DNA of 58,616 nucleotides from positions 24,982,443 to 25,041,058 of the forward strand of contig NC_068994.1 of the NCBI RefSeq assembly GCF_001194135.2, read 5' to 3'. The DNA comes from Octopus bimaculoides. Taxonomy: Eukaryota. The stretch's first letter is position 1. Every line of letters begins with the position of its first letter. Shown here piece after piece: positions 4,400 through 58,206 of this stretch. A program made the position numbers and the translations under genes. The notes under the pieces are model-generated. The model did not search any database. It saw only the letters and a list, made by a program, of their open reading frames with translations, and was not told the DNA's origin.

Positions 4400-5330
4400 C
4401 ACATTGAAAGTGTTGTGCCTGGAGACCTTTCCCTCTGTTATATTTTCATTTTATGCACGATTAAGGACATCACTTTTATATTTAGCACGAAATTGGGATG
4501 TTTTGTCTGTGGTGTGTTTGTGTATCAGCCTACTGCGTGTTTTTGCTTTTGTTGAGATGGATGTTGTTGTTGATGGTGGAGTTGTAGATATGTTGGTTTT
4601 GCTGTAGGCGTGGCTTGGGTAATACTGTCGTGATCGTGAGGCTCGTTCAGAGTGGGTGTTTTCTTTCTTTTTATTTTTTTATTTGCTTTGCTTACCCTCC
4701 TCGCAAGATGATATTTCCACGTCCGATGTGGAAGGGAATTGAGGTATGTTTGCGTGTGTGTTAGAAAATTTGGGAAAAGAGTGTAAAAGAGAGTTTAGTT
4801 GGATGTTTTCCAGGATTGCAGGCATAGGTTCTGTTGTAGTGGATACCGTAGTTGCTTTCGCTGGTCTTGCCGTTGCTACTGTTGTTGGTACTAATTCTGT
4901 TCTTCCTGTTCCCTTCGCTGCTGATGTTATTGTTGCACAATATTGCTGCCGTTGAGGCAGTGGTGTCGGCAGCATTGGGAGCCTCCTCTCTCTTGCATTT
5001 TAAGAAAGGACTGCTCTGAAGTGATTTTCCGCATTAAAAGTGTATTGCTTCCATTTATAGTGACGCATGCTATCAACCACCAGATGTCCAACCTAATGGT
5101 GGTGGGGCGACTCTCTAGCTTAACAAATCCTTCTTCCTAAATAGGATGGGTAATGGGGGGGCCTTGTCGCGTATATGGGCTATGGAGAGCTTTCAGCCCT
5201 CCAAACCCTCGAACTACCTTGTCCTGGTGACATTTTATACATTTGCCCATATTTCTTTCAGAGCTTGTGTGTTGCTGCTGCACAGCATCAAGTTTTAGAA
5301 CACACACAAATGACACACATCTGTTTTCCG
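4400..5330 (-). mobile_element. Tx1-like ORF1 remnant (low-complexity Thr/Pro/Gln tail and upstream pieces)
   Basis: The T/P/Q-rich ORF at 4679-4975 resembles the ORF1 C-terminus at 11361-12023 and 26732-27362. It has the same polarity as the adjacent ORF2 pieces. Confidence 0.45.
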
Positions 5331-13294: not shown

Positions 13295-13440
13295 CTGTCT
13301 TTGGGTTCTGAGTTCAAATTCTACCGAGATCGACTTTACCGTTCGCCCTTCCGAGTCGATAAATTAAGTACTAGTTGTGTACTGGAGTCAATTTAATCAA
13401 CAGGCTCCCTCCCCACAAACATTTCAGGCCTAGAAAAGTT
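13295..13440 (+). mobile_element. SINE (family C), partial
   Basis: GGGTTCTGAGTTCAAATTCTACCGAG.TCGACTTTACC...GTCGATAAATTAAGTAC.AG...CCCCACAAA..TTTCAGGCC. Homologous to 49340-49578 and 53235-53385. Confidence 0.8.
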
Positions 13441-45752: not shown

Positions 45753-46105
45753 TATTTCTATGAACATACATACACACAACGGGGTTACACTGGACTCTGA
45801 CTTTAGATCGGCTAATAAAGCATTCTGGCACAACACCCACCGCATTTCTGGCATGTGTTTATACCATCTTTTTCTGTTGTTATTCCATAGTGTTGGCATA
45901 GCTTCCAGTGTATATAGGTCCCAGCTCTGTCGTGTCTGTGAATATATTCCTTCTTAGCCAGGACTGGTCAGCCAGAGATAATATGATTTATTGTTTCTTG
46001 TCCATCTCCACATATTCTACAGTTACTTGTTATATTTCTTTTCATTATGTGTTTTTGGTAATTTCTGGTGGGGAGGCTTTGGTCTTGTGCAGCAATTAAA
46101 AATCC

Positions 46106-46106
<1 letters not shown>

Positions 46107-46160
<54 letters not shown>
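46107..46160. repeat. (TTA)n(TCA)n, the tail of the adjacent R4-like LINE
   Basis: Seen directly. Confidence 0.95.
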
Positions 46161-46170
<10 letters not shown>

Positions 46171-47617
46171 CATCATCATTGCCTTTGCGCAGCTTCTAAC
46201 GCTGGAGATGTACTACGGTGTCAGCTGTTCACTACCAGTGAACTAAGGTAACACCTCTTATCTTTCGAGCACCTTCTGGAGTATTCGAGCGCTTCCAAGC
46301 AGTGCTGTTTTTTGCAAGTTCTCCACCTTTATTGCAGCCCCTATTTGTTCCATGTACTTCTTGAGATTTTTGCTCACTGTTCCCAGGGCTCCGACAATTA
46401 TTGGTACCACTACCACCTTTTTCATCAACTGCTCTACCTCCCAAGCTAACCTATCGACTTTTCTTTCTTCCTTATCGCATACCTTGTTATCAGCTGGGCA
46501 TGCTATATCTACGATCCAACTAAGACTGTCTGGCTTTCTATTTTCTATCTCATGGTTGCACTGAATCATAAAATCCCACAGGATCTTTGTATTATCATTT
46601 TCGACGATGCCTTCGGGTTTGTGGTCGTACCAATGTTTTTCTCTGTCCAATGGACAAGCCTTACTATATTGTCGTGGCGTCTCTTACATTCCTTCTGAGC
46701 TAGTGGTGTACATTGGCTAGTAATATACCATACGGTTTCACCGCTTTGTCCACAGATTCTGCACTTATCAATTTCTGTTGAGTTGTCTATTCTGTGTTTT
46801 ATGTAGTTTGTTCTTAGTGCTTGCTCTTGGGCAGCACAGATTAGAGCCTCCGTTTCCAGTTTTAAATCACTTTTAGTCATCCACAGCCATCTTTTTTCTC
46901 TTGTCTTATCTTCAATATTCCTATGAATTCTTTTCTTTACCCACCTACTTTCATTCGTTTTCAATTTCTTGTATAGTGCTTTATCTTTGCAACCTTTCAA
47001 CCTACACAAGCCTAACCTTCTAACTTCTAATAATAGCGGATCTGTGGTATTTTTCACACACCAAGCTATGTTGTTTTCTTCTGCTCTAATACTGTGTTCG
47101 CATCCAATAAGTCCTCTTCCCCCTCTTTTACTTGGTACATATAGTCAGTCTGTGTCACTTTTTGGGTAGAGTGTCCCATATCTAGTTAGCAACCTTCTTG
47201 TATTTCTGTCTAAGCTGTTTAGTTCGTCTACTGTCCATGCAATTACCCCTCCTCCATATCTAAGGAGTGAAACCGCCCAGGTGTTGAAAGCTTCGATCTT
47301 ATTCCGTCCGTTTAATTTCGACTTAAGGATCAGTCTCAGTCTGCACAAGTACTCCATCTTAAATTTTTCTGTCATTTCTTTCTCCATCAATTTATCTATT
47401 TCCGAAATCCACCCCCACCCCCGTCTCTTCTATCTGCTTCATAACCTCCTCCAATGGTATCGATAGCCCGTCCATACATTTGATTTTGCCTGTCTTCAAG
47501 GCTAACAGACCACGCCTTCTCATTTCGAACTCCATTCTGATATCAGCACTGAAAGTATGCACTGTATCTACGAGGGAACTGACTTGGGCTTCACTTTTAC
47601 CATAAAGTTTGAGGTCA
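46161..47617 (-). mobile_element. 5'-truncated R4/Dong-clade LINE
   Basis: DLKLYGK; KLNGRNKIEAFNTWAVSLLRYG; ETEALICAAQEQALRTN; CRICGQSGETVWYITSQC; KILWDF; IVDIACPAD; LQKTALLGSARILQKVL*. Both ends lie in (TAA)n. Confidence 0.9.
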
Positions 47618-47629
47618 CTATTATCATTA

Positions 47630-47683
<54 letters not shown>
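47618..47683. repeat. (TTA)n tract joining two R4-like copies head to tail
   Basis: Seen directly. Confidence 0.95.
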
Positions 47684-47684
<1 letters not shown>

Positions 47685-47689
47685 GTTCT

Positions 47690-48201
47690 TTTTTTTCTTC
47701 TTTCTTCAAATTTTCTTTCATTTCTCGCCGAGCGTTTTCCGTACACCTAGGGCAGAGAAGCTCATGGTATGCATTCCCAGTTTACACACGCAAATTTCAC
47801 ATGTAAAATAAGTATGTAAAAAAAATTAATAAATAGATAAATTCATCAATGGATGTTGTTTTCACAGCGATAATGCTCTTCTCAGTACATGAGTCGTTCC
47901 AGTTAACACGATTTTTTGCAATTCCTGTAGGGATGGTAAGCCTGGTATCATTTTTCAAATAGGTTTCAGTACCTTTTTTTATCATTCCTAGAGATCCTAC
48001 AATCACTGGTACAGTAGTCGCCTTGAGGTGCCAGATTTTTTCAATTTCTATTAGCAAGTCTTTATATTTACTGACCTTGTCAAATTCTTTCGCCGCTATA
48101 TTGTGATCGCAAGGAATACTCATGTCAGTTAATAAACACATCTTTTTTGTCTGATCCTTTATAATAATATCCGGTTTATTAGCTTTTATAGTTTTGTCGG
48201 T
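47690..48201 (-). mobile_element. R4/Dong-clade LINE 3' end (RLE + 3' UTR), 5' part in a gap
   Basis: ANKPDIIIKD...LLTDMSIP.D.NIAAKEFDKVSKYKDLLIEIEKIWH...PVIVGSLG, then UTR and (AAT)n. Confidence 0.85.
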
Positions 48202-49176
48202 NNNNNNNNNNNNNNNNNNNNNNNNNNNNNNNNNNNNNNNNNNNNNNNNNNNNNNNNNNNNNNNNNNNNNNNNNNNNNNNNNNNNNNNNNNNNNNNNNNN
48301 NNNNNNNNNNNNNNNNNNNNNNNNNNNNNNNNNNNNNNNNNNNNNNNNNNNNNNNNNNNNNNNNNNNNNNNNNNNNNNNNNNNNNNNNNNNNNNNNNNNN
48401 NNNNNNNNNNNNNNNNNNNNNNNNNNNNNNNNNNNNNNNNNNNNNNNNNNNNNNNNNNNNNNNNNNNNNNNNNNNNNNNNNNNNNNNNNNNNNNNNNNNN
48501 NNNNNNNNNNNNNNNNNNNNNNNNNNNNNNNNNNNNNNNNNNNNNNNNNNNNNNNNNNNNNNNNNNNNNNNNNNNNNNNNNNNNNNNNNNNNNNNNNNNN
48601 NNNNNNNNNNNNNNNNNNNNNNNNNNNNNNNNNNNNNNNNNNNNNNNNNNNNNNNNNNNNNNNNNNNNNNNNNNNNNNNNNNNNNNNNNNNNNNNNNNNN
48701 NNNNNNNNNNNNNNNNNNNNNNNNNNNNNNNNNNNNNNNNNNNNNNNNNNNNNNNNNNNNNNNNNNNNACACACACACACACACACACAAACATTCACAT
48801 TCCTCACTCTTAAACGCACACACATATACTTACACAGAGTTGAAGCGCTGTTTGATTTTTGTTTCACCGTGGACTTTTCACCATCCCACTTCCATCGGTC
48901 GATCACCCTTTCTCATTCATATATCGTGACGGAGAAATACACAAGACTATTATTATAGTAGATTATTATAGTAGAAGATACACGGCGCTCTATTTGCCAC
49001 TTCCTCTCCCTCATTGCTATTATTTTTCTCTCACTTCCTCTCAGACATGGCTATTACTTTCACTACTTCTCTTTCACCGAATTGCTATTTTCTCCCTTCT
49101 CCCTTCACCATTCACTCTTACTGCGTGATTTTGGACAAATACACACACACACACACACACATATAAGAACACTACG

Positions 49177-49330
<154 letters not shown>

Positions 49331-49339
49331 TTTTTTTTT

Positions 49340-49578
49340 AAAGCGGTGAGCTGGCAGAATCGCTGAACGAAATGGTTTGCGGTATTTCGCCTGTCGCAAC
49401 GTTCTGAGTTCAAATTGCTCCGAGGTTGACTTTACCTTTCATACTTTCAGGGTCGATAAATTTCATCATTTCGGTGTCGATAAATCAAGTACCAGTGAAA
49501 ACCTTGGATTTATGTAATCGACTAATTCTCTCCCCACAAATTTCAGTCCTGGTGCCTTTAGTAAAGAGGATTATTATC
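49340..49578 (+). mobile_element. Near full-length SINE (family C)
   Basis: GCGGTGAGCTGGCAGAATCG (A-box-like)...GTTCTGAGTTCAAATT (B-box-like)...CCCCACAAATTTCAG.CCT.GTGCCTTTAGTAAAGAGG(ATT)n. Confidence 0.85.
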
Positions 49579-49584
49579 TTTGTT

Positions 49585-52500
49585 TTACTTCTCAGAGTAA
49601 AACTTCTCGATCTTGTTTCGTCTGGTAAATTCTGTGACAGCGGACAGCAGCCTGCTTTCAGAGGTCTCACAGGGTCTCTTTCCGCACATTACAAGCTTTG
49701 GTACTTGGTTGTCATCGTGTGTGACATTCAACATTCAAGTACCAATCTCAAAATCCTAGCTGTCCCCAGTAGCTTGCTCTGTTCTCATGTGAATTTCGAT
49801 TTCTCTGACATATTTCTCGAATTTGTTAGTGCTCCGAATGCCCCAACAACTACTGGAATGACAGACACTCTCCTCATTGTCCACATACTTGCAATTTCGT
49901 CTTTTAGTAGTCTGTACTTTTCAATCTTTTCTAGTTCTCTGTCATTTATGCGTGCATCCCCAGATATTGCAATATCTATAATCTTAGTTTCCTTTTCCCC
50001 TTTATCTGCCACAACAATATCTGGTCTCCTAGCCTCAATTAGGGAGTCACATTGGATTGTAAAATCCCACAGTATCTTACATTCCTTGTTCTCGGTGACT
50101 CCTTCTGGTTCATGTTCCTACCATTTCTGTACACTATTAGAGCCATACTTTTCATAGTGGACGAACTTAGCCACGTTATAGTACCTCCTTTTCTAGTGCT
50201 TTTGGGCCAGCTTACTACACTCATTCACAATCAGTTTCGTTTCTGCTGCCACACATCCTACAAAGAGGCGATTCGCTTCTCTTATCTATTTGGAACTTGG
50301 TGTAATTAGTTCTCAGAGCTTGTTCCTGGGCGCTGCATATCAATGCCTCAGTGCATCATTCCAGGTCACTTTTTCTTAGCCAGCACCAAGTGTTGATCTT
50401 GTATTTTCCATCGATTTCGGCTCATGCAGTGGTTTCATTTTCCAGCTGTTTACTCTTTCATCTTCATCTTGTTTCTTAAATTTTTGTACGTACATCACAT
50501 TTTCGCTAGATATTGTATTGTTAATTCTGATAGCGGCAAGTAAGGATTCGCTCTACTGTTTGATGTACCATCCCAGACTGTTTTTCTGATTGACAACACA
50601 GATCTTGCATCATATAAAGCATCTTCCTCCCCTGTTCCTAGGCCCGTACAGTCTATCAGTATTACTTTTGGGATGTAGTTCCTTGTTTAATTATCATCAC
50701 TTTTCTGGTTTTCCTGTCCATTTCCTCAAGCTCGTTCTTTGCCCACTTAACAACACCTGCACCGTATCGCATTAAGGAAACAGCCCATGTGTTCATTTCC
50801 CTGAACTTGTTTTCCGATTGAGTCTACTTCCCATAATTAATTTAATTCTTCTGAGATATTCTTGCCTAAAGCTTTCCTTCATTTCACTTCCCTTGATTTT
50901 GTCGTATTCCAAGATCCCCATTAGTCTCAATATCCTTGATATTCACGCCGTTGGATAGCTCTATACCATCAGACGACACTACACTGTCTTTTAGTATTAT
51001 CAGCATACCACACTTTTTAGTCCCAAATTCCATTCCGATATCATTACTGCACTCTTGAACCTAGGATCCAAAGATCTTTAAGTATGTAACAGATGATTTA
51101 ATTTTCCTCCACTTTTCAAGGTGTACCCCGATGTCACTTTCCGTAGTATCTGTGTGATGTGTATCATACAAATCACAAACAGCAATGGTGATAGGCTATC
51201 TTCTTGAAATATTCCTCTCTTGTTCTTAAACCTCGTCAAAAATTTTCCACATGAAGTTAGCTCTTTATTCTAGTTTTTCATTGATCTCCTAATAAAATTT
51301 GATATGTCATCAGACACATGTACCAGCTCAAGACTTTCTAAAATCCAGGAATGGGGGAACCATGCCATACGCTTTCTTATAATCGATCCACGCCATGCCC
51401 AGATTAGTAAGTCTTTTCTGGCCGTCGTTCAATACCATTCTGTCCATCAGATATTGGTCTTTTGTTCCTCGGTTTTTCCTTCTACATCCTTTCTGTTCCA
51501 CTGGAAGTTTGTCATTCATTTACAGGAATTTGTACACATAATTAGATATTATTCTTGTCATCAGCTTCCGCATCAGGGGCAGACATGTGATAGGCCGGTA
51601 ATTATTCACTGCATTGCCTTTATTTGAATCCTTTCGTCACAGAATTGTTTTACCTGTGTTAAGCCACTTTGGGATTTGCACCCCGCTGTTGATCCATTTG
51701 CTTTGCTATTCGTCTGTGTAGTACTGGGAGATTTTTCAGCCAATATCCTTTTACTCCATCCGGGCCTGGGTATTTCTAGTTTGAGATCTTTGTTGTCTGG
51801 TTACCAGTTCAGTCGTTATTCTAATATTGCTTTGTTTCACTTCATATTTCTTTTACCTTAATTCCTTCAACCATTTAGCATCTTTTTTATGCTTTCTTTC
51901 ATTATCCCAGATGTTACTCCAAAACCTTTTACTTTTTTCAGCGTCTGGTCTCTCAGCTGTTGATAAATCCTCTTCTGGCCTTGTTGGAACAATTTGTTGA
52001 TTTTATGTTGTTCAATTCTTTGTTCATATCTCTTGATCTTTGTCGATTTAGCCTGCAATCTTTGTTTCAGCTCTTCAAGAACTACATTTAGCCCCTTTTT
52101 CTTTATCCAACATCTACGTTCTAGTTTCTGATATTTCACCTTTTTTCTTTTTTTCCAAGATGTTGATATGTTTCCGTAGTTTATTCATTGATTGTTTTAT
52201 TCTTCTTTTCCACCAAGGTTCTTTTCCTTCATTCACACACTTACGGTTTGGTTCGAGGCGTACCTTATTTCCTATATGGTTAATGCAAGCTTTAATCAAT
52301 CTGCTCGTTCCGGTTATATCATTTCTTTCAGTATTTTATTCATCTTAAGGGTCCACCCACTGAGCACATTTCTATCTACTTTCCTGAATCCATTTCTTTC
52401 CGTGTCTAAGTTTCCCTCAATGATACTAGCAATGTTTTCGATCATTCCTTTGTCTTCATTATTTAGTCATTCTCTACACCCAGGGCTTGAGTATTCTCAT

Positions 52501-53150
52501 TAAGTAAAGAATCGTCAACATTTTCTATATCTGCGTCTGCATCGCTCCCCGTGTTTTTAATCATCACCCGCTTCCTAATCTCATCGAGCTCTAATATTGT
52601 TAGCCATCCTTTCTTCCTTATTGCTCTTACCTGATCACAGAGTCTCTGTTCTGTAATATCTGAGCCATGCTTCCCCATCCATATGTCATGGAACTTCTTT
52701 TTATATCCTCTTATGGGTCTCCCTTCATTATCAGTGGGTCTACTCAAAATATAACCTTTCATGACTGTTGTATTCATCGTCTTAGTCCATTTAGTTATAG
52801 CAACCGTATAATGACGACCGGGCACCTGTAGTTCCGTCCTCACTTACGCCGTTGTTTGTGTTAATTCTATTATTCATTTCACTCATGCGGAGGAAAGTGT
52901 TGATAAGGTGTCACAACAACCAGTATTTTTATCGAGACACCATCTCTTGAGGGTTTGTCTAAAAAGACAAAGGGACCCTTCTGCCCTTAGAAGTTTAAGT
53001 GAGCTATCCTGGACATCAAACCAGTATTCTATGCTCCGCAGTTGGTGAAAGAGTTGGTCTTTGGATGGTCGTTGAATTTTCAGAGTTCATCTTCCCTTAG
53101 ACAGGTCTTGTATTTCGTCCTGCAGGCTCACCAAATAGCAAAAAGAACCC
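49585..53150 (-). mobile_element. Near full-length, degenerate R4/Dong-clade LINE (5' leader, single ORF, 3' UTR)
   Basis: N-terminus PGRH..KWTKTMN..VMKGY..S.P..EQRLCDQVRAIRKKGWL. RT: [40 protein letters not shown]: ILWDFTIQCD, IIDIAISGD, EKIEKY. Ends in a short GATAATAAT. Confidence 0.9.
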
Positions 53151-53234: not shown

Positions 53235-53385
53235 CTCACTACGTTCTTAGTTCAAATTCCCCGAGGTCGACTTTACCTTTCATCTTTCAGAGGTCGATAA
53301 ATTAGTGAAACACTAGAGTCCATGTAATCGAGTAGTTACCTTCCTACAAATTTCAGGCCTTGTGCCTTTGGTAGAAAGGATTTTT
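53235..53385 (+). mobile_element. SINE (family C), partial
   Basis: CTACGTTCTTAGTTCAAATTCCCCGAGGTCGACTTTACCTTTCA...AAATTTCAGGCCTTGTGCCTT. Confidence 0.85.
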
Positions 53386-53399
53386 TTAATTTTCATTTT

Positions 53400-56300
53400 A
53401 AACTCAGGTTTTGTAGGAACTCCTGGAGTCTTGTATGCGTAGCGGGTTTACTGCCTGCAGCCTACGGTACCATGCTATCTGTTCTTTTCACCTATCTAAT
53501 ACTTTCCTCATTATTCTGGCCGTGCCAAGAAGACAAACTTTTTGTAACAGTTCTACTTGGCACTCTGTTCTGATTTCCTTTATATTCCTCTTGATGCCTT
53601 CTGATACAGTCCCCAAGGTTCAAACAGTAGTTGACATTATTTTCACTTTCATTTTCCATAGCCGGGCTATTTCGTACTTAAGAGGGTCGTATTTATCTAT
53701 TTTTCGTGTTCCTTCTTGACTTCTCGTGGGTCAAAGGCGTACGCAGCATCAACTATATAGCACATGTGATGCATCTTGTCAACCACCACTAAGTCCGGTC
53801 TGTTATACACTAGCACCCGATCTGTTTGGCTTGGGAAATCCCAGAGAATTTTGGAAGTCTCCGACTCCGCCACTCTCTGCGGTTTGTGCTCATACTACGC
53901 CTAGCCTCTCTCTAGCCCCACTTTTCGCAGTTTAAAATGTAGCATTTTCACTACCTCATCGTGTCGCCACAACATATAGTGGATTTAGACATGTTTAAGA
54001 CTTTCGTTCGTGATATGGGCAATGGTTTCGTCTACTCTATTACAAATGTGACACAACGGAGACACGTGCTCGTTTCTGAGGTTGACCCTCTAATTTGTGT
54101 CCAAAGCTTCTTGCGCCGCCAGTATACTGCTCTCAGTCTCTTTTTTTTTCAGTGTTCTTTTCTTCATTCAATCCCAGCAACTTCAGTTGTGGCTACATGG
54201 AATTGTTTGTGTAGTCTCTTGTTGTGTAATGCTTCTCATGATAGATATCTCATTAAGCTCCCAAGTTCGATACGTACGCAGTCTTCCACACTTATCATTC
54301 CTCTTCCTCCATTTGCTCTCTTCGTGTATAGTGAAGTGTCAGCACGTGGATGATAGGTTCCATGCATTGTTAGGAGCTTTCTTGACTTCCTGTCCGACTC
54401 CTTTAGCTCCTCCTCTGTCCATTACAGGATTCTAGCGCCATACCGAACTACAGCGACTTCGCGAGTTTATTGCCGAAATTATGTTTCTAGCATTTAGTTT
54501 TGAAGCCAATATTTTTCTCACTCGCCGCAGGTACTCTTTCTTTGTCTTTTGTTTCATATCATTGTGTTTAATTCCACCTGCCTCAAGTATTCCTAAGTAT
54601 TTATAACCGGATTCAAGTTCAATTGCATTCATCATTTCACCACTTGGCATACATATGCCTTCTGCCCTGACAAACTTTCCTCGTCTCATTACCATCGTAA
54701 CACATTTTGAGAGTCCAAACTTCATTTTGATATCATTCGAGAAGTCCGCACAGACTGGACTAGGATGTCCAGTTCTGCCTCACGTTAGTGAACAACTTCA
54801 AGTCGTCCATGATTAGTAAGTGGTTCAGTTTTCCATTACATCTTCCCAGATCATACTCCAACTTTGCCTTCTGTAGTATTTCATTCAAGGGGATCCTTCC
54901 CAGCACAAAGATCAGTGGGTACACAGTGCCTCCCTGGAAAATTCCTCCCTTGGTTTTCACTGTCCTGATACCTGATTCTCTGCTGCCAATTCAGTTCTCC
55001 ATTTCACACTTATATAAGGCTTCTCATGTTTTCTCCTACTCCATACATTTCCATGATTCTTGTTGGGAGTGTGCTACCATACCGTATGCTTTACGATAGT
55101 AAATCCATGCCATATTCAGGATTTCTCTTGTGTTTTCTCTATCAGTTTCTGATAATTAGATTTCGTTCCCCGGTTCCTCTTTTGACACACTTTCTGTTCA
55201 ATAGGTAGCAGCCCACTTTTTTCTAAGTATCTGTACAGTTCACGGACCAAAGCACCTGACAATAGTTTCCACATTAGCGGAAGATAAGTAATATTGCATC
55301 CAACTTTCGACCAATCTTTTCTGCCTGAACTGTTTTTTTTTTCTATTGTCATATCTTTCCAGTTTTGCATTGATTGCTACTACTCTTTGTTTCAATTCTT
55401 CCAAGATTAAATCATAGTCTTTATCTCTTATTCTGTATGTTCCTTCCAGTCTTATTTTCATGCTTTTGTCCTGCAATTCCTCTTTTAAATCTATCAACTT
55501 GTCCTAAATGTCTTTTTAACTTGGTTTTTCACAAATTCGTCTACGCCAGTACGATTCTTTACGCTCTGTTTATTCTCTTCTTTTGTATCCAACTCTATCT
55601 GCAGCAACTATAGCTGCAACCCAAATAATCTTGTTAGTTTCAGTTTCAGTTATATTTCCAGTCTGGAAAAGTCCAAGGACAAAATCTATCCTTTCGGATT
55701 TAGCATTGAGCTTGCGTCGATCAATGCACTTCAGATTCGGGCAGTTTGATCCTGGTTTTCTCTAATATATCGGCATATCATCCTCACTGTCTTGATCATC
55801 ATCGTATTCTTGTGATCTAGCTCTTCCCATTACTTCTGCTTCATTTGCACTTTGTTCTACGTTTTCACTGCCACCATTCTTTTCTCTGTCCTCGCTGGGC
55901 ACGTTATCTGCTTGTGAAGTATTATTACTGTTTTCTACTTTCCTTTTTATCTCTTCAATTTCCATGTCTGTTAACCACTCTTTTGTTCTTATTGCTAACT
56001 GTTGCCCACTTATCTCGAAGAGTCCTATTTCATCCCATTCTGCGTTGTCGGAATCCCCTTCTGCTGGGTTCACTTCTGATCCAGCATTCAATTACAGTTC
56101 AGTTTGCCTCCTTAGCCTACCTTCTTCTCTGACTTTGTGTATAAGCAGTCTCTGGATGACGACCGGGCCTGCGCCGCTCAACCATAGGACACGTCCCAGG
56201 TGAAAGGCACTCACCTTTGGTTCCAGCCTCATTCACACCATTATTTGATACATTTATATTAGACATTTTCACTCAATATTGAGGTTTGTGTTTTAAGGTT

Positions 56301-56720
56301 AACCAGCAACCAGTACTGTTATCGAGACACCATCTCTAGTAAGATTGTCAACCAAGACTGCAGAACTCTTACTACCAATAAGTTGAGACTGTTCCCATTC
56401 GCATTTTTGAGTACTGGGAACCATGTTCATGATTCTCACTAGGAAACTGGTGAAAGTCCGTTGGTTCCGAATGCTCATCCAAACATTGCTCGGTAGCTAA
56501 GTCCCGATTCGCGGCTCATTCACCTTCATCCCAGGCATGGAGCCGTTGGATACTGACAGATTGTCACCAATGTGGCTAAGAAGTCCTATCTACCCCAGTT
56601 TTTAAATGATTGTTCCTTCTCCTAGACAGATTACTAACCAAGGCTCACGAGTTCTGTCTGCACGTTTTTAGAATGGCCATTGACTCTCCTGAATTCCTCT
56701 GCCCTTTGCTGAGTTTTGCA
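53400..56720 (-). mobile_element. Second near full-length, degenerate R4/Dong-clade LINE (different subfamily)
   Basis: PGRH motif at ~56160; EWLTDMEIEEIK; ITYLPLMWKLLSG; GIFQGG...IMDDLKLF; MKFGLSKC; YKYLGILE; ETESSILAAQEA; CHICNRVDETIAHI; KILWDF..RPDLVV; LQKVCLLGTARIMRKVL*. The 5' leader spans ~56200-56720. Confidence 0.88.
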
Positions 56721-57159
56721 TTTAATCCCGCAAGATGTCCAAAATTCACCCTTCTCCGGCTCGACGGTGTAACGGTTCTACAACGCCACATGTTAATCGC
56801 TATGGCTTATTAATTATTTGTACATTATTACAATTTCAATATTATTACTACAATCCCTATCACCTTATGTAGCTCTTATTAGCATTGCCATTACTGTTAG
56901 GTATCATTATTATTCCTCTTATTCGTTGATATTGTTGTTGTCAGTGGTGGTAGCTTTGTTGCAATATGTTAGGTTATCTTCTAATTATTGGTTGGCTCAA
57001 TGGAACTTTAGCTGTCATCCCCAGTATTATTCTTTTTCTGTGGTTGCCACAACTTGTTTTGTTCCTGTCGTGAATGTCATCCATCGATATGGACGCGTTG
57101 GTGACGTCATCATTGCAATTTTCGGGTCCTGATATTGTCTCCCTTGATTTCTTTAGCCA

Positions 57160-57266
57160 ATATATTATTATTATAATATATAGACATAAAAACAGACACA
57201 AATTATTATTATTATAATATACAGGCACAAAAATTATTATTATTATAATATACAGACACAAAAACA

Positions 57267-57270
<4 letters not shown>
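57160..57270. repeat. AT-rich minisatellite (ATTATTATTATAATATACAG.CAC/TAAAAA units)
   Basis: Three imperfect copies seen directly. Confidence 0.8.
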
Positions 57271-57298
<28 letters not shown>

Positions 57299-58206
57299 NN
57301 NNNNNNNNNNNNNNNNNNNNNNNNNNNNNNNNNNNNNNNNNNNNNNNNNNNNNNNNNNNNNNNNNNNNNNNNNNNNNNNNNNNNNNNNNNNNNNNNNNNN
57401 NNNNNNNNNNNNNNNNNNNNNNNNNNNNNNNNNNNNNNNNNNNNNNNNNNNNNNNNNNNNNNNNNNNNNNNNNNNNNNNNNNNNNNNNNNNNNNNNNNNN
57501 NNNNNNNNNNNNNNNNNNNNNNNNNNNNNNNNNNNNNNNNNNNNNNNNNNNNNNNNNNNNNNNNNNNNNNNNNNNNNNNNNNNNNNNNNNNNNNNNNNNN
57601 NNNNNNNNNNNNNNNNNNNNNNNNNNNNNNNNNNNNNNNNNNNNNNNNNNNNNNNNNNNNNNNNNNNNNNNNNNNNNNNNNNNNNNNNNNNNNNNNNNNN
57701 NNNNNNNNNNNNNNNNNNNNNNNNNNNNNNNNNNNNNNNNNNNNNNNNNNNNNNNNNNNNNNNNNNNNNNNNNNNNNNNNNNNNNNNNNNNNNNNNNNNN
57801 NNNNNNNNNNNNNNNNNNNNNNNNNNNNNNNNNNNNNNNNNNNNNNNNNNNNNNNNNNNNNNNNNNNNNNNNNNNNNNNNNNNNNNNNNNNNNNNNNNNN
57901 NNNNNNNNNNNNNNNNNNNNNNNNNNNNNNNNNNNNNNNNNNNNNNNNNNNNNNNNNNNNNNNNNNNNNNNNNNNNNNNNNNNNNNNNNNNNNNNNNNNN
58001 NNNNNNNNNNNNNNNNNNNNNNNNNNNNNNNNNNNNNNNNNNNNNNNNNNNNNNNNNNNNNNNNNNNNNNNNNNNNNNNNNNNNNNNNNNNNNNNNNNNN
58101 NNNNNNNNNNNNNNNNNNAAAGTAGTATATGTACGTGTGTGTGAGAGTGAGAGGGGAGGGGGGGAGAAAGATGAACGATTAAATATAAATACATGATTTG
58201 TTAGAC

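Follow-up and report, generated by a model that had tools for sequence, protein, structure and literature searches.

The window analysed here is a stretch of 58,616 nucleotides from Octopus bimaculoides (NCBI RefSeq assembly GCF_001194135.2, contig NC_068994.1, positions 24,982,443 to 25,041,058 of the forward strand), and coordinates without a locus name are positions in the window. It contains two copies, A and B, of a long interspersed nuclear element (LINE), each with a homologous non-coding module directly upstream of the start of its open reading frame (ORF; Table 1). Comparison of these with the leaders of related elements shows, from the pattern of compensatory changes, that the block containing the module is a selectively maintained RNA fold, and that it forms the ORF-proximal part of the leader in a large family of Dong-like LINEs. 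The predicted domain lies at the 3' end of the leader and is conserved and partly pseudoknotted. An earlier note on this DNA had proposed a covarying multi-helix RNA in the 5' leaders of R4-like LINEs, and in this respect the comparison bears it out, with the outer helix, the GYC hairpin that it encloses and the hairpin with the GAGA stem all kept by compensatory change.

Host elements and their leaders

Copies A and B are both decayed, with many stops and frameshifts. Fragments of the reverse transcriptase (RT; RVT_1 match) remain, and in both copies a restriction-like endonuclease (RLE) stretch, RPD(I/L)VV..D, lies C-terminal to the RT. This is the single-ORF layout, RT and then RLE, of the R4/Dong clade of RLE LINEs. 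For the RT-containing ORF of an intact relative, the nearest solved proteins are those of R2 (E 1.5e-23, versus 1e-13 for L1 ORF2). Dong is an R4-clade element that targets (TAA)n (PMC3774820), and the same habit is seen among the relatives, where (TAA)n stands immediately 5' of the elements at loci L001-L006, L027, L038-L042 and L044; in the window, repeats resembling TAA lie 5' of copy B, near 56806. We label the elements R4-like RLE LINEs because of an RT nearest to that of R2, the RLE stretch and the Dong-like (TAA)n target habit, and RT similarity together with the TAA habit supports their assignment to the RLE-type, R4/Dong-like LINEs.

Copies are often found head to tail at related loci, as B and A are in the window, an arrangement that fits successive insertions of new copies into the TAA tail of one already in place. 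In the window B lies directly upstream of A (56806-49570(-)), and at three other loci (L040, L042 and L044) the RT/RLE gene of another copy ends shortly before the (TAA)n on the 5' side of the next one. The ORF begins with a highly conserved N-terminal domain, PIRGYR..W....ITEQRLCDQARAIRKNGWL..LE.I (52466-52843(-) in the window; homologues P0001-P0154), which has at least 1353 homologues at E<=1e-5 and no Pfam match, and which may be a Myb/SANT-like nucleic-acid-binding domain. The octocoral Paramuricea clavata carries both a homologue and the module (locus L041), and most other homologues are on high-coverage contigs from ENA and JGI metagenome-type assemblies.

The leaders of A and B (minus strand, 53051-52875 and 56456-56264 respectively) contain all of the strings quoted in the earlier note, where it had placed them. 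They can be aligned only locally (blastn, 71.6% identity over 148 nt, E 1e-13), and the rest is unalignable. One 18-mer, GAGATGGTGTCTCGATAA, has exactly two occurrences in the window, where 0.04 would be expected. Both blocks end at ATG(AGTGAA)ATG, the start of a conserved N-terminal peptide (MSEM/MSN..NGVN) found in A, B and their homologues. The longer peptide M..N..NNGV.E.GT..PGRH is common to A and B, copy A being frameshifted a few codons in. The frame of the block itself would differ between the two copies, and its invariant core contains TAG and TAA stops in two frames. A coding origin is ruled out on these two grounds; the block is therefore not decayed coding sequence, and its proposed non-coding status holds.

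Fold and covariation of the leader module

Relatives were gathered by a search with the N-terminal peptide, from 12 contigs and by a protein-guided scan of metagenome contigs, giving ~40 loci with leaders. A covariance model (R1), built from 11 seeds and comprising helices P1, P3, P4 and H5, finds 34 module instances in 173 kb. Each of these is in a leader and in sense orientation, and the leader module was confirmed in 30 of the fetched loci. In addition to the ORF-proximal module (M2), copy B has an upstream module (M1), and tandem upstream modules are also present in L007, L015, L034 and L041 (Paramuricea).

Read 5' to 3' on the sense strand, the module consists of CUCAU (C0), GGGY (P0), the 6-8-nt 5' strand of P1, RCUC (the other strand of P0), UUUA and P3, a 3-bp hairpin with the loop UUGGUU. 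These are followed by AA, the 3' strand of P1, P4 (loop UGGUG), the tail GAUAAAAAYACY and H5, and, after ~25 nt, by AUGAG-UGAA-AUG.

The pairings are strongly maintained. In the 34-row model alignment, 91.0% of cells in P1, P3, P4 and H5 are in standard pairs, compared to 42-50% when the partners are slid by one to three columns. Changes on both sides are seen in 17 of the 19 pairs (34 instances), and none of 500 shuffles matches the observed value on any of five measures; sequence kinship can inflate shuffle tests, although the slid-partner control preserves relatedness. A similar picture emerges from a MAFFT alignment made without fitting to the structure, with 87% of cells paired versus 37-59% after sliding, and a covariation score reached by none of 500 shuffles.

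P1, of 5-8 bp, has double changes at all eight of its model pairs. Its sequence changes by subfamily while complementarity is kept, as in AGGGU/ACCCU (copy A), GUAAGA/UCUUAC (copy B), AGAUGA/UCAUCU, AGGAGAG/CUCUCCU, AGGUGGG/CCCACCU, AUAUGAG/CUCAUAU and AGACAGA/UCUGUCU. P3 is 96.6% paired and occurs as GCC/GGC, GUC/GAC and ACC/GGU, with exchange of CG for UA at the middle pair. P4 is GAGA/UCUC or GUGA/UCAC, an AU to UA change seen in 8-10 instances, and is UGG/CCA in Paramuricea. H5 is paired in 89% of cells; its fourth pair is GC in 13 sequences, UA in five and unpaired in 11.

A fifth helix, P0, which is not part of model R1, joins GGGY just 5' of the P1 5' strand to RCUC just 3' of the same strand. 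It is 91% paired, its pair 7:18 is UA in 12 sequences, CG in seven and UG in five, and its covariation score is reached by none of 500 shuffles. The two strands of P0 flank the 5' strand of P1, so that the helices would either be alternative states or combine into an H-type pseudoknot in which the first P1 pair is open, P0 stacks on P1 and P3 occupies the long loop.

Other pairings are less certain. RNAalifold proposes that the P4 loop (L4) GGUG pairs with the YACY of the tail, but the changes there are one-sided only and the association is not significant (permutation p ~0.09, eight loop types); Paramuricea (L041) has AGUU with AACU at this position. A candidate closing helix, formed by the CUCAU of C0 just 5' of P0 with the AUGAG that holds the first AUG, is seen in the minimum free energy (MFE) fold of L038 and is almost invariant. 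Two further candidates were rejected by eye: pairing of an upstream GUCUC with the GAGA of P4, as GUCUC stays constant where P4 turns to GUGA/UCAC, and pairing of the P3 loop (L3) UUGGUU with the AACC of H5, as the L3 variants are uncompensated.

Searches of Rfam with the window leaders and ten related loci, at gathering thresholds and at E<=10, returned only noise and no ribozyme model, no exonuclease-resistant RNA (xrRNA) model and no internal ribosome entry site (IRES) model; the models without a match at E<=10 include the hepatitis delta virus (HDV) families (HDV, CPEB3 and drz), hammerhead, twister, pistol, hatchet and xrRNA. The 18-mer, scanned as an exact pattern against collections of viral and prokaryotic genomes, gave only chance bacterial matches, a protein-guided scan of viral contigs gave no match, and the leader motif is not described in any paper found in the literature searched.

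The suggestion of the earlier note that the block may be an uncatalogued structured RNA agrees with the covariation in the 34 instances and with the lack of an Rfam match in searches as permissive as E<=10. Three structures that it had described do not extend to the family. The competing helix (CTTCT/AGAAG in one copy and CTTAT/GTAAG in the other) and the 5' block CTTTCACCA are features of copies A and B only, and the long-range closing helix TGCGGAG/CTCCGCA has no counterpart beyond the two window copies. What is added is the covarying P0, the extra tandem module of copy B, and the finding that the half of the module from P4 to the AUG is the most conserved.

Table 1. Positions of leader features of LINE copies A and B in the window.
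Feature	Position	Strand	Remarks
Copy A, module M2 (P0, P1, P3, P4, A-rich tail, H5)	52905-52989	-	Covariance model R1, 65.7 bits, E 4e-12
Copy A, P0 5' strand GGGC	52983-52986	-	Partner CCC at 52972-52974; three of four pairs form; P0 covaries across the family
Copy A, P1 5' strand AGGGT	52975-52979	-	Partner ACCCT at 52950-52954
Copy A, P3 hairpin GTC-TTTTTA-GAC (3 bp, 6-nt loop L3)	52957-52968	-	
Copy A, P1 3' strand ACCCT	52950-52954	-	
Copy A, P4 hairpin GAGA-TGGTG-TCTC	52934-52946	-	
Copy A, conserved single-stranded tail GATAAAAATACT	52922-52933	-	Terminal TACT is candidate partner of loop L4 GGTG (RNAalifold)
Copy A, hairpin H5 (GGT..ACC)	52907-52921	-	89% paired in the family
Copy A, ATGAGTGAAATG, two in-frame start codons (M-S-E-M)	52875-52886	-	Homologous proteins start MSEM.. 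or MS..
Copy A, remnant of upstream hairpin M0, CTGG-TTTGATGT-CCAG	53009-53024	-	From comparison with L001, L002, L038 and L040
Copy A, CTTTCACCAAC-TGCGGAG (5' block and long-range strand of the earlier note)	53034-53051	-	A and B only; no counterpart in ~40 loci
Copy A, long-range strands TGCGGAG/CTCCGCA	within 53034-53051 and 52886-52893	-	
Copy B, module M2	56295-56380	-	R1, 92.8 bits, E 6.6e-18
Copy B, P1 (T)AGTAAGA with TCTTACT	56367-56373 with 56338-56344	-	
Copy B, P3 GTC-TTGGTT-GAC	56347-56358	-	
Copy B, P4	56324-56336	-	
Copy B, H5	56297-56311	-	
Copy B, ORF start TTGAGTGAAAATG	56264-56276	-	ATG at 56264-56266
Copy B, upstream module M1, AGACAGA..GCC-TTGGTT-AGT..TCTGTCT-AG-GAGAAGG..	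56578-56666	-	R1, 21.8 bits, E 0.011
Copy B, M1 P1 strands AGACAGA and TCTGTCT	56653-56659 and 56624-56630	-	

Several other repeats surround the two LINE copies. A repeat whose sequence includes tRNA-like A and B boxes (..TGGCAGAATCG.. and ..GAGTTCAAATT..) is present at 49335-49570(+), 53241-53400(+) and 13305-13362(+), and resembles a tRNA-derived short interspersed nuclear element; ARAGORN calls no tRNA in it. One of its copies lies between the 3' end of LINE copy B and the copy A leader, and another between the copy A 3' untranslated region (UTR) and a (TAA)n(ATC)n array. At 49177-49310 a perfect (ATC)45 microsatellite adjoins a short (ATT)n, and the two make up the repeats that follow copy A on its 3' side in the sense direction. 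Further RT/RLE LINE remnants of this general type, also decayed, occupy 45800-48900(-), where (TAA)n/(TAT)n arrays (46107-46170 and 47619-47684) and an extended stretch of N break them up. Runs of N that mark assembly gaps lie at ~47900-48760 and ~57250-58110 and are flanked by (GT/CA)n and (TA)n simple repeats. Among the related loci, L039 has a tRNA gene (5011-5083(-); Rfam tRNA, 36 bits) ~1.5 kb downstream of a truncated LINE copy, and a nearby C-type lectin gene indicates that this contig is from an animal host.

Leader architecture and a proposed role

The longest leaders (L038, L040, L042, L043, L044, L014 and L021) are composed of a ~130-nt 5' domain, a hairpin (M0), a linker ending in GUCUCAU, module M2, H5 and the AUG. 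M0 has the form CCCCG..CCGG-N8-CCGG-CGGGG, and the CCCCG/CGGGG enclosure is present in intact relatives, with copy A retaining only a remnant of the hairpin. P2-like partners for M0 (CCAUGA/UCAUGG, GAGAC/GUCUC and GAGG/CCUC) were considered by eye and rejected as inconsistent between subfamilies and away from the HDV positions. A further sense-strand motif, (G/A)AAAUACYGG, is found twice in each of the leaders of L002, L038 and copy A (in copy A at 53015-53030 and 52918-52930), once entering M0 and once entering H5, and UGAAAU recurs at the start codon. The Y of the motif covaries between its two copies, which have CCGG at both or CUGG at both, and this suggests a module duplication or a shared ligand.

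There are four instances in which an element begins at the edge of a leader structure. Three independent insertions, represented by L001 (~5840), L002/L003 (L002 ~1837) and L004-L006 (L004 ~1846), start 0-2 nt from the first C of M0, right after (TAA)n, whereas close relatives have the ~130 nt of extra 5' domain (TGTCCTGGGYATGAC..; L038 2700-2840). One of these, L014, has ~82% protein identity to the representative of the L002/L004 subfamily. The fourth, L027, starts at the GGGG of P0 in its first module, and its relative L035 extends further upstream. Such exact starts at the edges of structures hint at processing of the RNA or at 5'-to-3' decay that stalls there; the cases number only four.

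The module keeps an almost fixed position relative to the ORF: in 22 of 23 sequences, 111-121 nt separate P1 from the ATG. Three loci (L016, L019 and L026) have a U/C-rich tract instead of P0, P1 and P3, and retain P4, the tail, H5 and the AUG region. The conservation of the P4-to-AUG half, the constant distance to the AUG, the presence of the first AUG in the closing helix and the replacement of the head by a polypyrimidine tract in some subfamilies together suggest a platform. Our preferred explanation, to which we give a probability of about 0.45, is that the domain acts in cis, without catalysis, as a platform for the start of translation, for loading of the element's own protein into a ribonucleoprotein (RNP), or for both. 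A new leader domain that acts in cis in translation or in RNP assembly is, by analogy with related elements, the most likely assignment. On an RNA that is promoter-less and probably uncapped, the domain may present the AUG to cap-independent initiation, and it may also bring the element's own protein to the RNA 5' end, like the 5' RNA of R2. In PMC12222951 and its references 16, 32 and 67, R2 RNA is described as uncapped, the structured 5' RNA of R2Bm as controlling second-strand cleavage by its protein, and ribozyme folds at R2 5' ends as linked to translation initiation and stability.

Several considerations weigh against a platform of this type. Every functional statement about it is by analogy. 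Tandem duplication of the module in several lineages is not required by a single ribosome-positioning device, and the conserved unpaired segments UUGGUU, AA, AG and CGAUAA resemble an active site or the core of a tertiary structure. The modules of Paramuricea (L041) are ~230 nt from the AUG, so that proximity to the start codon is not universal. Both C0 and the AUG-proximal hairpin are almost invariant and are without covariation support, RNAalifold recovers only P3 and the L4-tail pairing from the MAFFT alignment, and MFE z-scores are ordinary (-1.35 to +1.14, not significant).

Site-specific RLE LINEs, R2 and its relatives, are in development as RNA-only tools for gene insertion, and the means by which uncapped RLE LINE RNAs are processed at their 5' ends, stabilised, translated and recognised are only partly understood. 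A compact, covariation-supported leader domain of ~115 nt that is present both in an octocoral and in the host of the window offers a tractable model, with natural compensatory mutants.

Alternative functions and comparison with known systems

It is also conceivable, at a low but realistic probability, that the module is an active RNA device new to cellular retrotransposons, whether a self-cleaving ribozyme of a new or a strongly remodelled HDV-like class or an xrRNA-like exonuclease stop, whose tandem use would fix the 5' end of uncapped LINE RNA and protect it. Such a device would explain why independent copies start exactly at the edges of leader structures. Its two forms are best weighed separately, each beside the known RNA that it resembles.

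The first form is a self-cleaving ribozyme, divergent HDV-like or of a new class, that cuts at its own 5' edge to free or trim the LINE RNA from read-through transcripts. The earlier note had set the block apart from the HDV topology, which is wrong as stated, since an outer helix around a 3-bp hairpin, a next hairpin and then C-G-A is the HDV order (P1, P3, P4 and J4/2). P1, of 5-8 bp here and 6-7 bp in HDV-like ribozymes, has its 3' strand after P3, and P3 is a covarying 3-bp helix (GCC/GGC, as in HDV itself) with a 6-nt loop. The segment that follows P4, C-G-A-(U)-A-A, resembles the J4/2 sequence of HDV and CPEB3 (C-G-A-A). The unpaired nucleotides, including those of the joining regions, are strongly conserved, and the three insertions that start at the M0 edge and the L027 start at the P0 GGGG would be products of cleavage of this kind. 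The hosts are likewise RLE LINEs, with the (TAA)n target of Dong and the RNA in the 5' leader. There are precedents for 5' release in Dong, R4 and R2, and Dong (TAA-specific, R4 clade) and R4 have active HDV-like ribozymes at their 5' ends (PMC3774820).

However, other features speak against membership in the HDV family, and we regard a ribozyme as unlikely. The defining P2 pseudoknot, CUUUA with UAAA, is paired in 72.2% of cells against a shuffle mean of 72.6%, has a covariation score of 0.037 versus 0.042, and lacks compensatory change, with five lineages changing the 5' strand alone. L3 is UUGGUU or a near variant, in which U and G are present and the conserved C is absent in nearly all instances, and a spacer of 1-2 nt (AA/AG) separates P3 from the P1 3' strand. 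The nucleotide after P4, at the J4/2 position, is C in M2, where the opening G of P4 is available to it as a partner (GC in 27 of 30), and U in most M1 modules. P0 is foreign to the HDV fold and is joined directly to the first nucleotide of P1. Whereas the HDV 5' end is at P1, the modules of full-length leaders are 60-450 nt inside the element and sometimes duplicated, such that cleavage would remove sequence that is still inherited; L027 alone begins at a module, and does so at P0 rather than P1. A relaxed HDV descriptor applied to four long leaders gave thousands of non-specific solutions, none consistent across loci, and the Rfam searches described above gave no ribozyme match. The nearest known RNAs of this type are the HDV-like self-cleaving ribozymes at the 5' ends of R2, R4 and Dong (Eickbush, Burke & Eickbush 2013, PMC3774820), and such ribozymes were reportedly also described by Ruminski et al. 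in 2011. Given the unsupported P2, the absence of C from nearly all L3 loops, the U after P4 in most M1 modules, the additional P0, the internal position and the lack of an Rfam match, the module is HDV-like in layout and not a demonstrable member of the HDV family, and its cleavage is putative.

An xrRNA-like fold that shields the uncapped LINE RNA, or at least its ORF, from 5'-to-3' decay is improbable, although the module resembles the architecture of flaviviral xrRNAs, a compact fold of ~70-85 nt in which a helix encloses a hairpin and is followed by a second hairpin. Tandem duplication is a further parallel, and possible ones are pairing of the 5' flank into the junction (here P0, which joins that flank to the strand right after the P1 5' strand and might form a ring) and a candidate pairing of the apical loop with the 3' flank (here GGUG with YACY, or AGUU with AACU in Paramuricea). 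Copies that start at the 5' edge of a structure (L027 and the short forms) would fit copied intermediates of stalled decay, and PMC12222951 presents R2 5' structures as thought to stabilise uncapped RNA. On the other side, the second pseudoknot (L4 with the tail) does not reach significance, and P0 uses the junction strand on the opposite side from flaviviral xrRNAs. There are only four cases of informative 5' ends, of which three are at M0, a different structure, and the host is a cellular retrotransposon rather than a viral 3' UTR; no Rfam xrRNA model is matched.

That the block has no function at the RNA level, being a DNA-level internal promoter or the product of recent common descent with incidental pairings, is very improbable: internal promoters are present in many LINE leaders, the thermodynamic z-scores are ordinary and related sequences can inflate shuffle tests, but P1 differs in almost every subfamily and yet stays complementary, the relatedness-preserving slid-partner control falls far below the observed pairing, P3 and P4 have double changes, and 34 of 34 matches are on the sense strand.

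The cis-acting platform that we favour has its closest functional counterparts in two other groups of RNAs. One is the 5' RNA element of R2Bm, a protein-binding pseudoknot, which like the module is structured, pseudoknotted and near the 5' end or ORF start of an RLE LINE, and which acts in cis with the element's own protein (references 16 and 32 of PMC12222951). The R2 element overlaps the ORF start and was defined biochemically, whereas protein binding by the module is putative, and the two have no detectable sequence relationship. The other group comprises IRES-like leaders, such as the intergenic region (IGR) IRES of dicistroviruses and the HDV-like folds reported to promote LINE translation. 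These share with the module a pseudoknotted domain that closes on or near the AUG of an RNA expected to be capless. The module differs in having no sequence or model similarity to them and in its AUG spacing, which is not universal (Paramuricea), and a role in translation is proposed here by analogy.

The module belongs with the structured RNAs in the 5' leaders of RLE LINEs and is a good candidate for a new Rfam family. It has the layout of a known 5' ribozyme, fails the pseudoknot that defines that ribozyme, and carries a different one.

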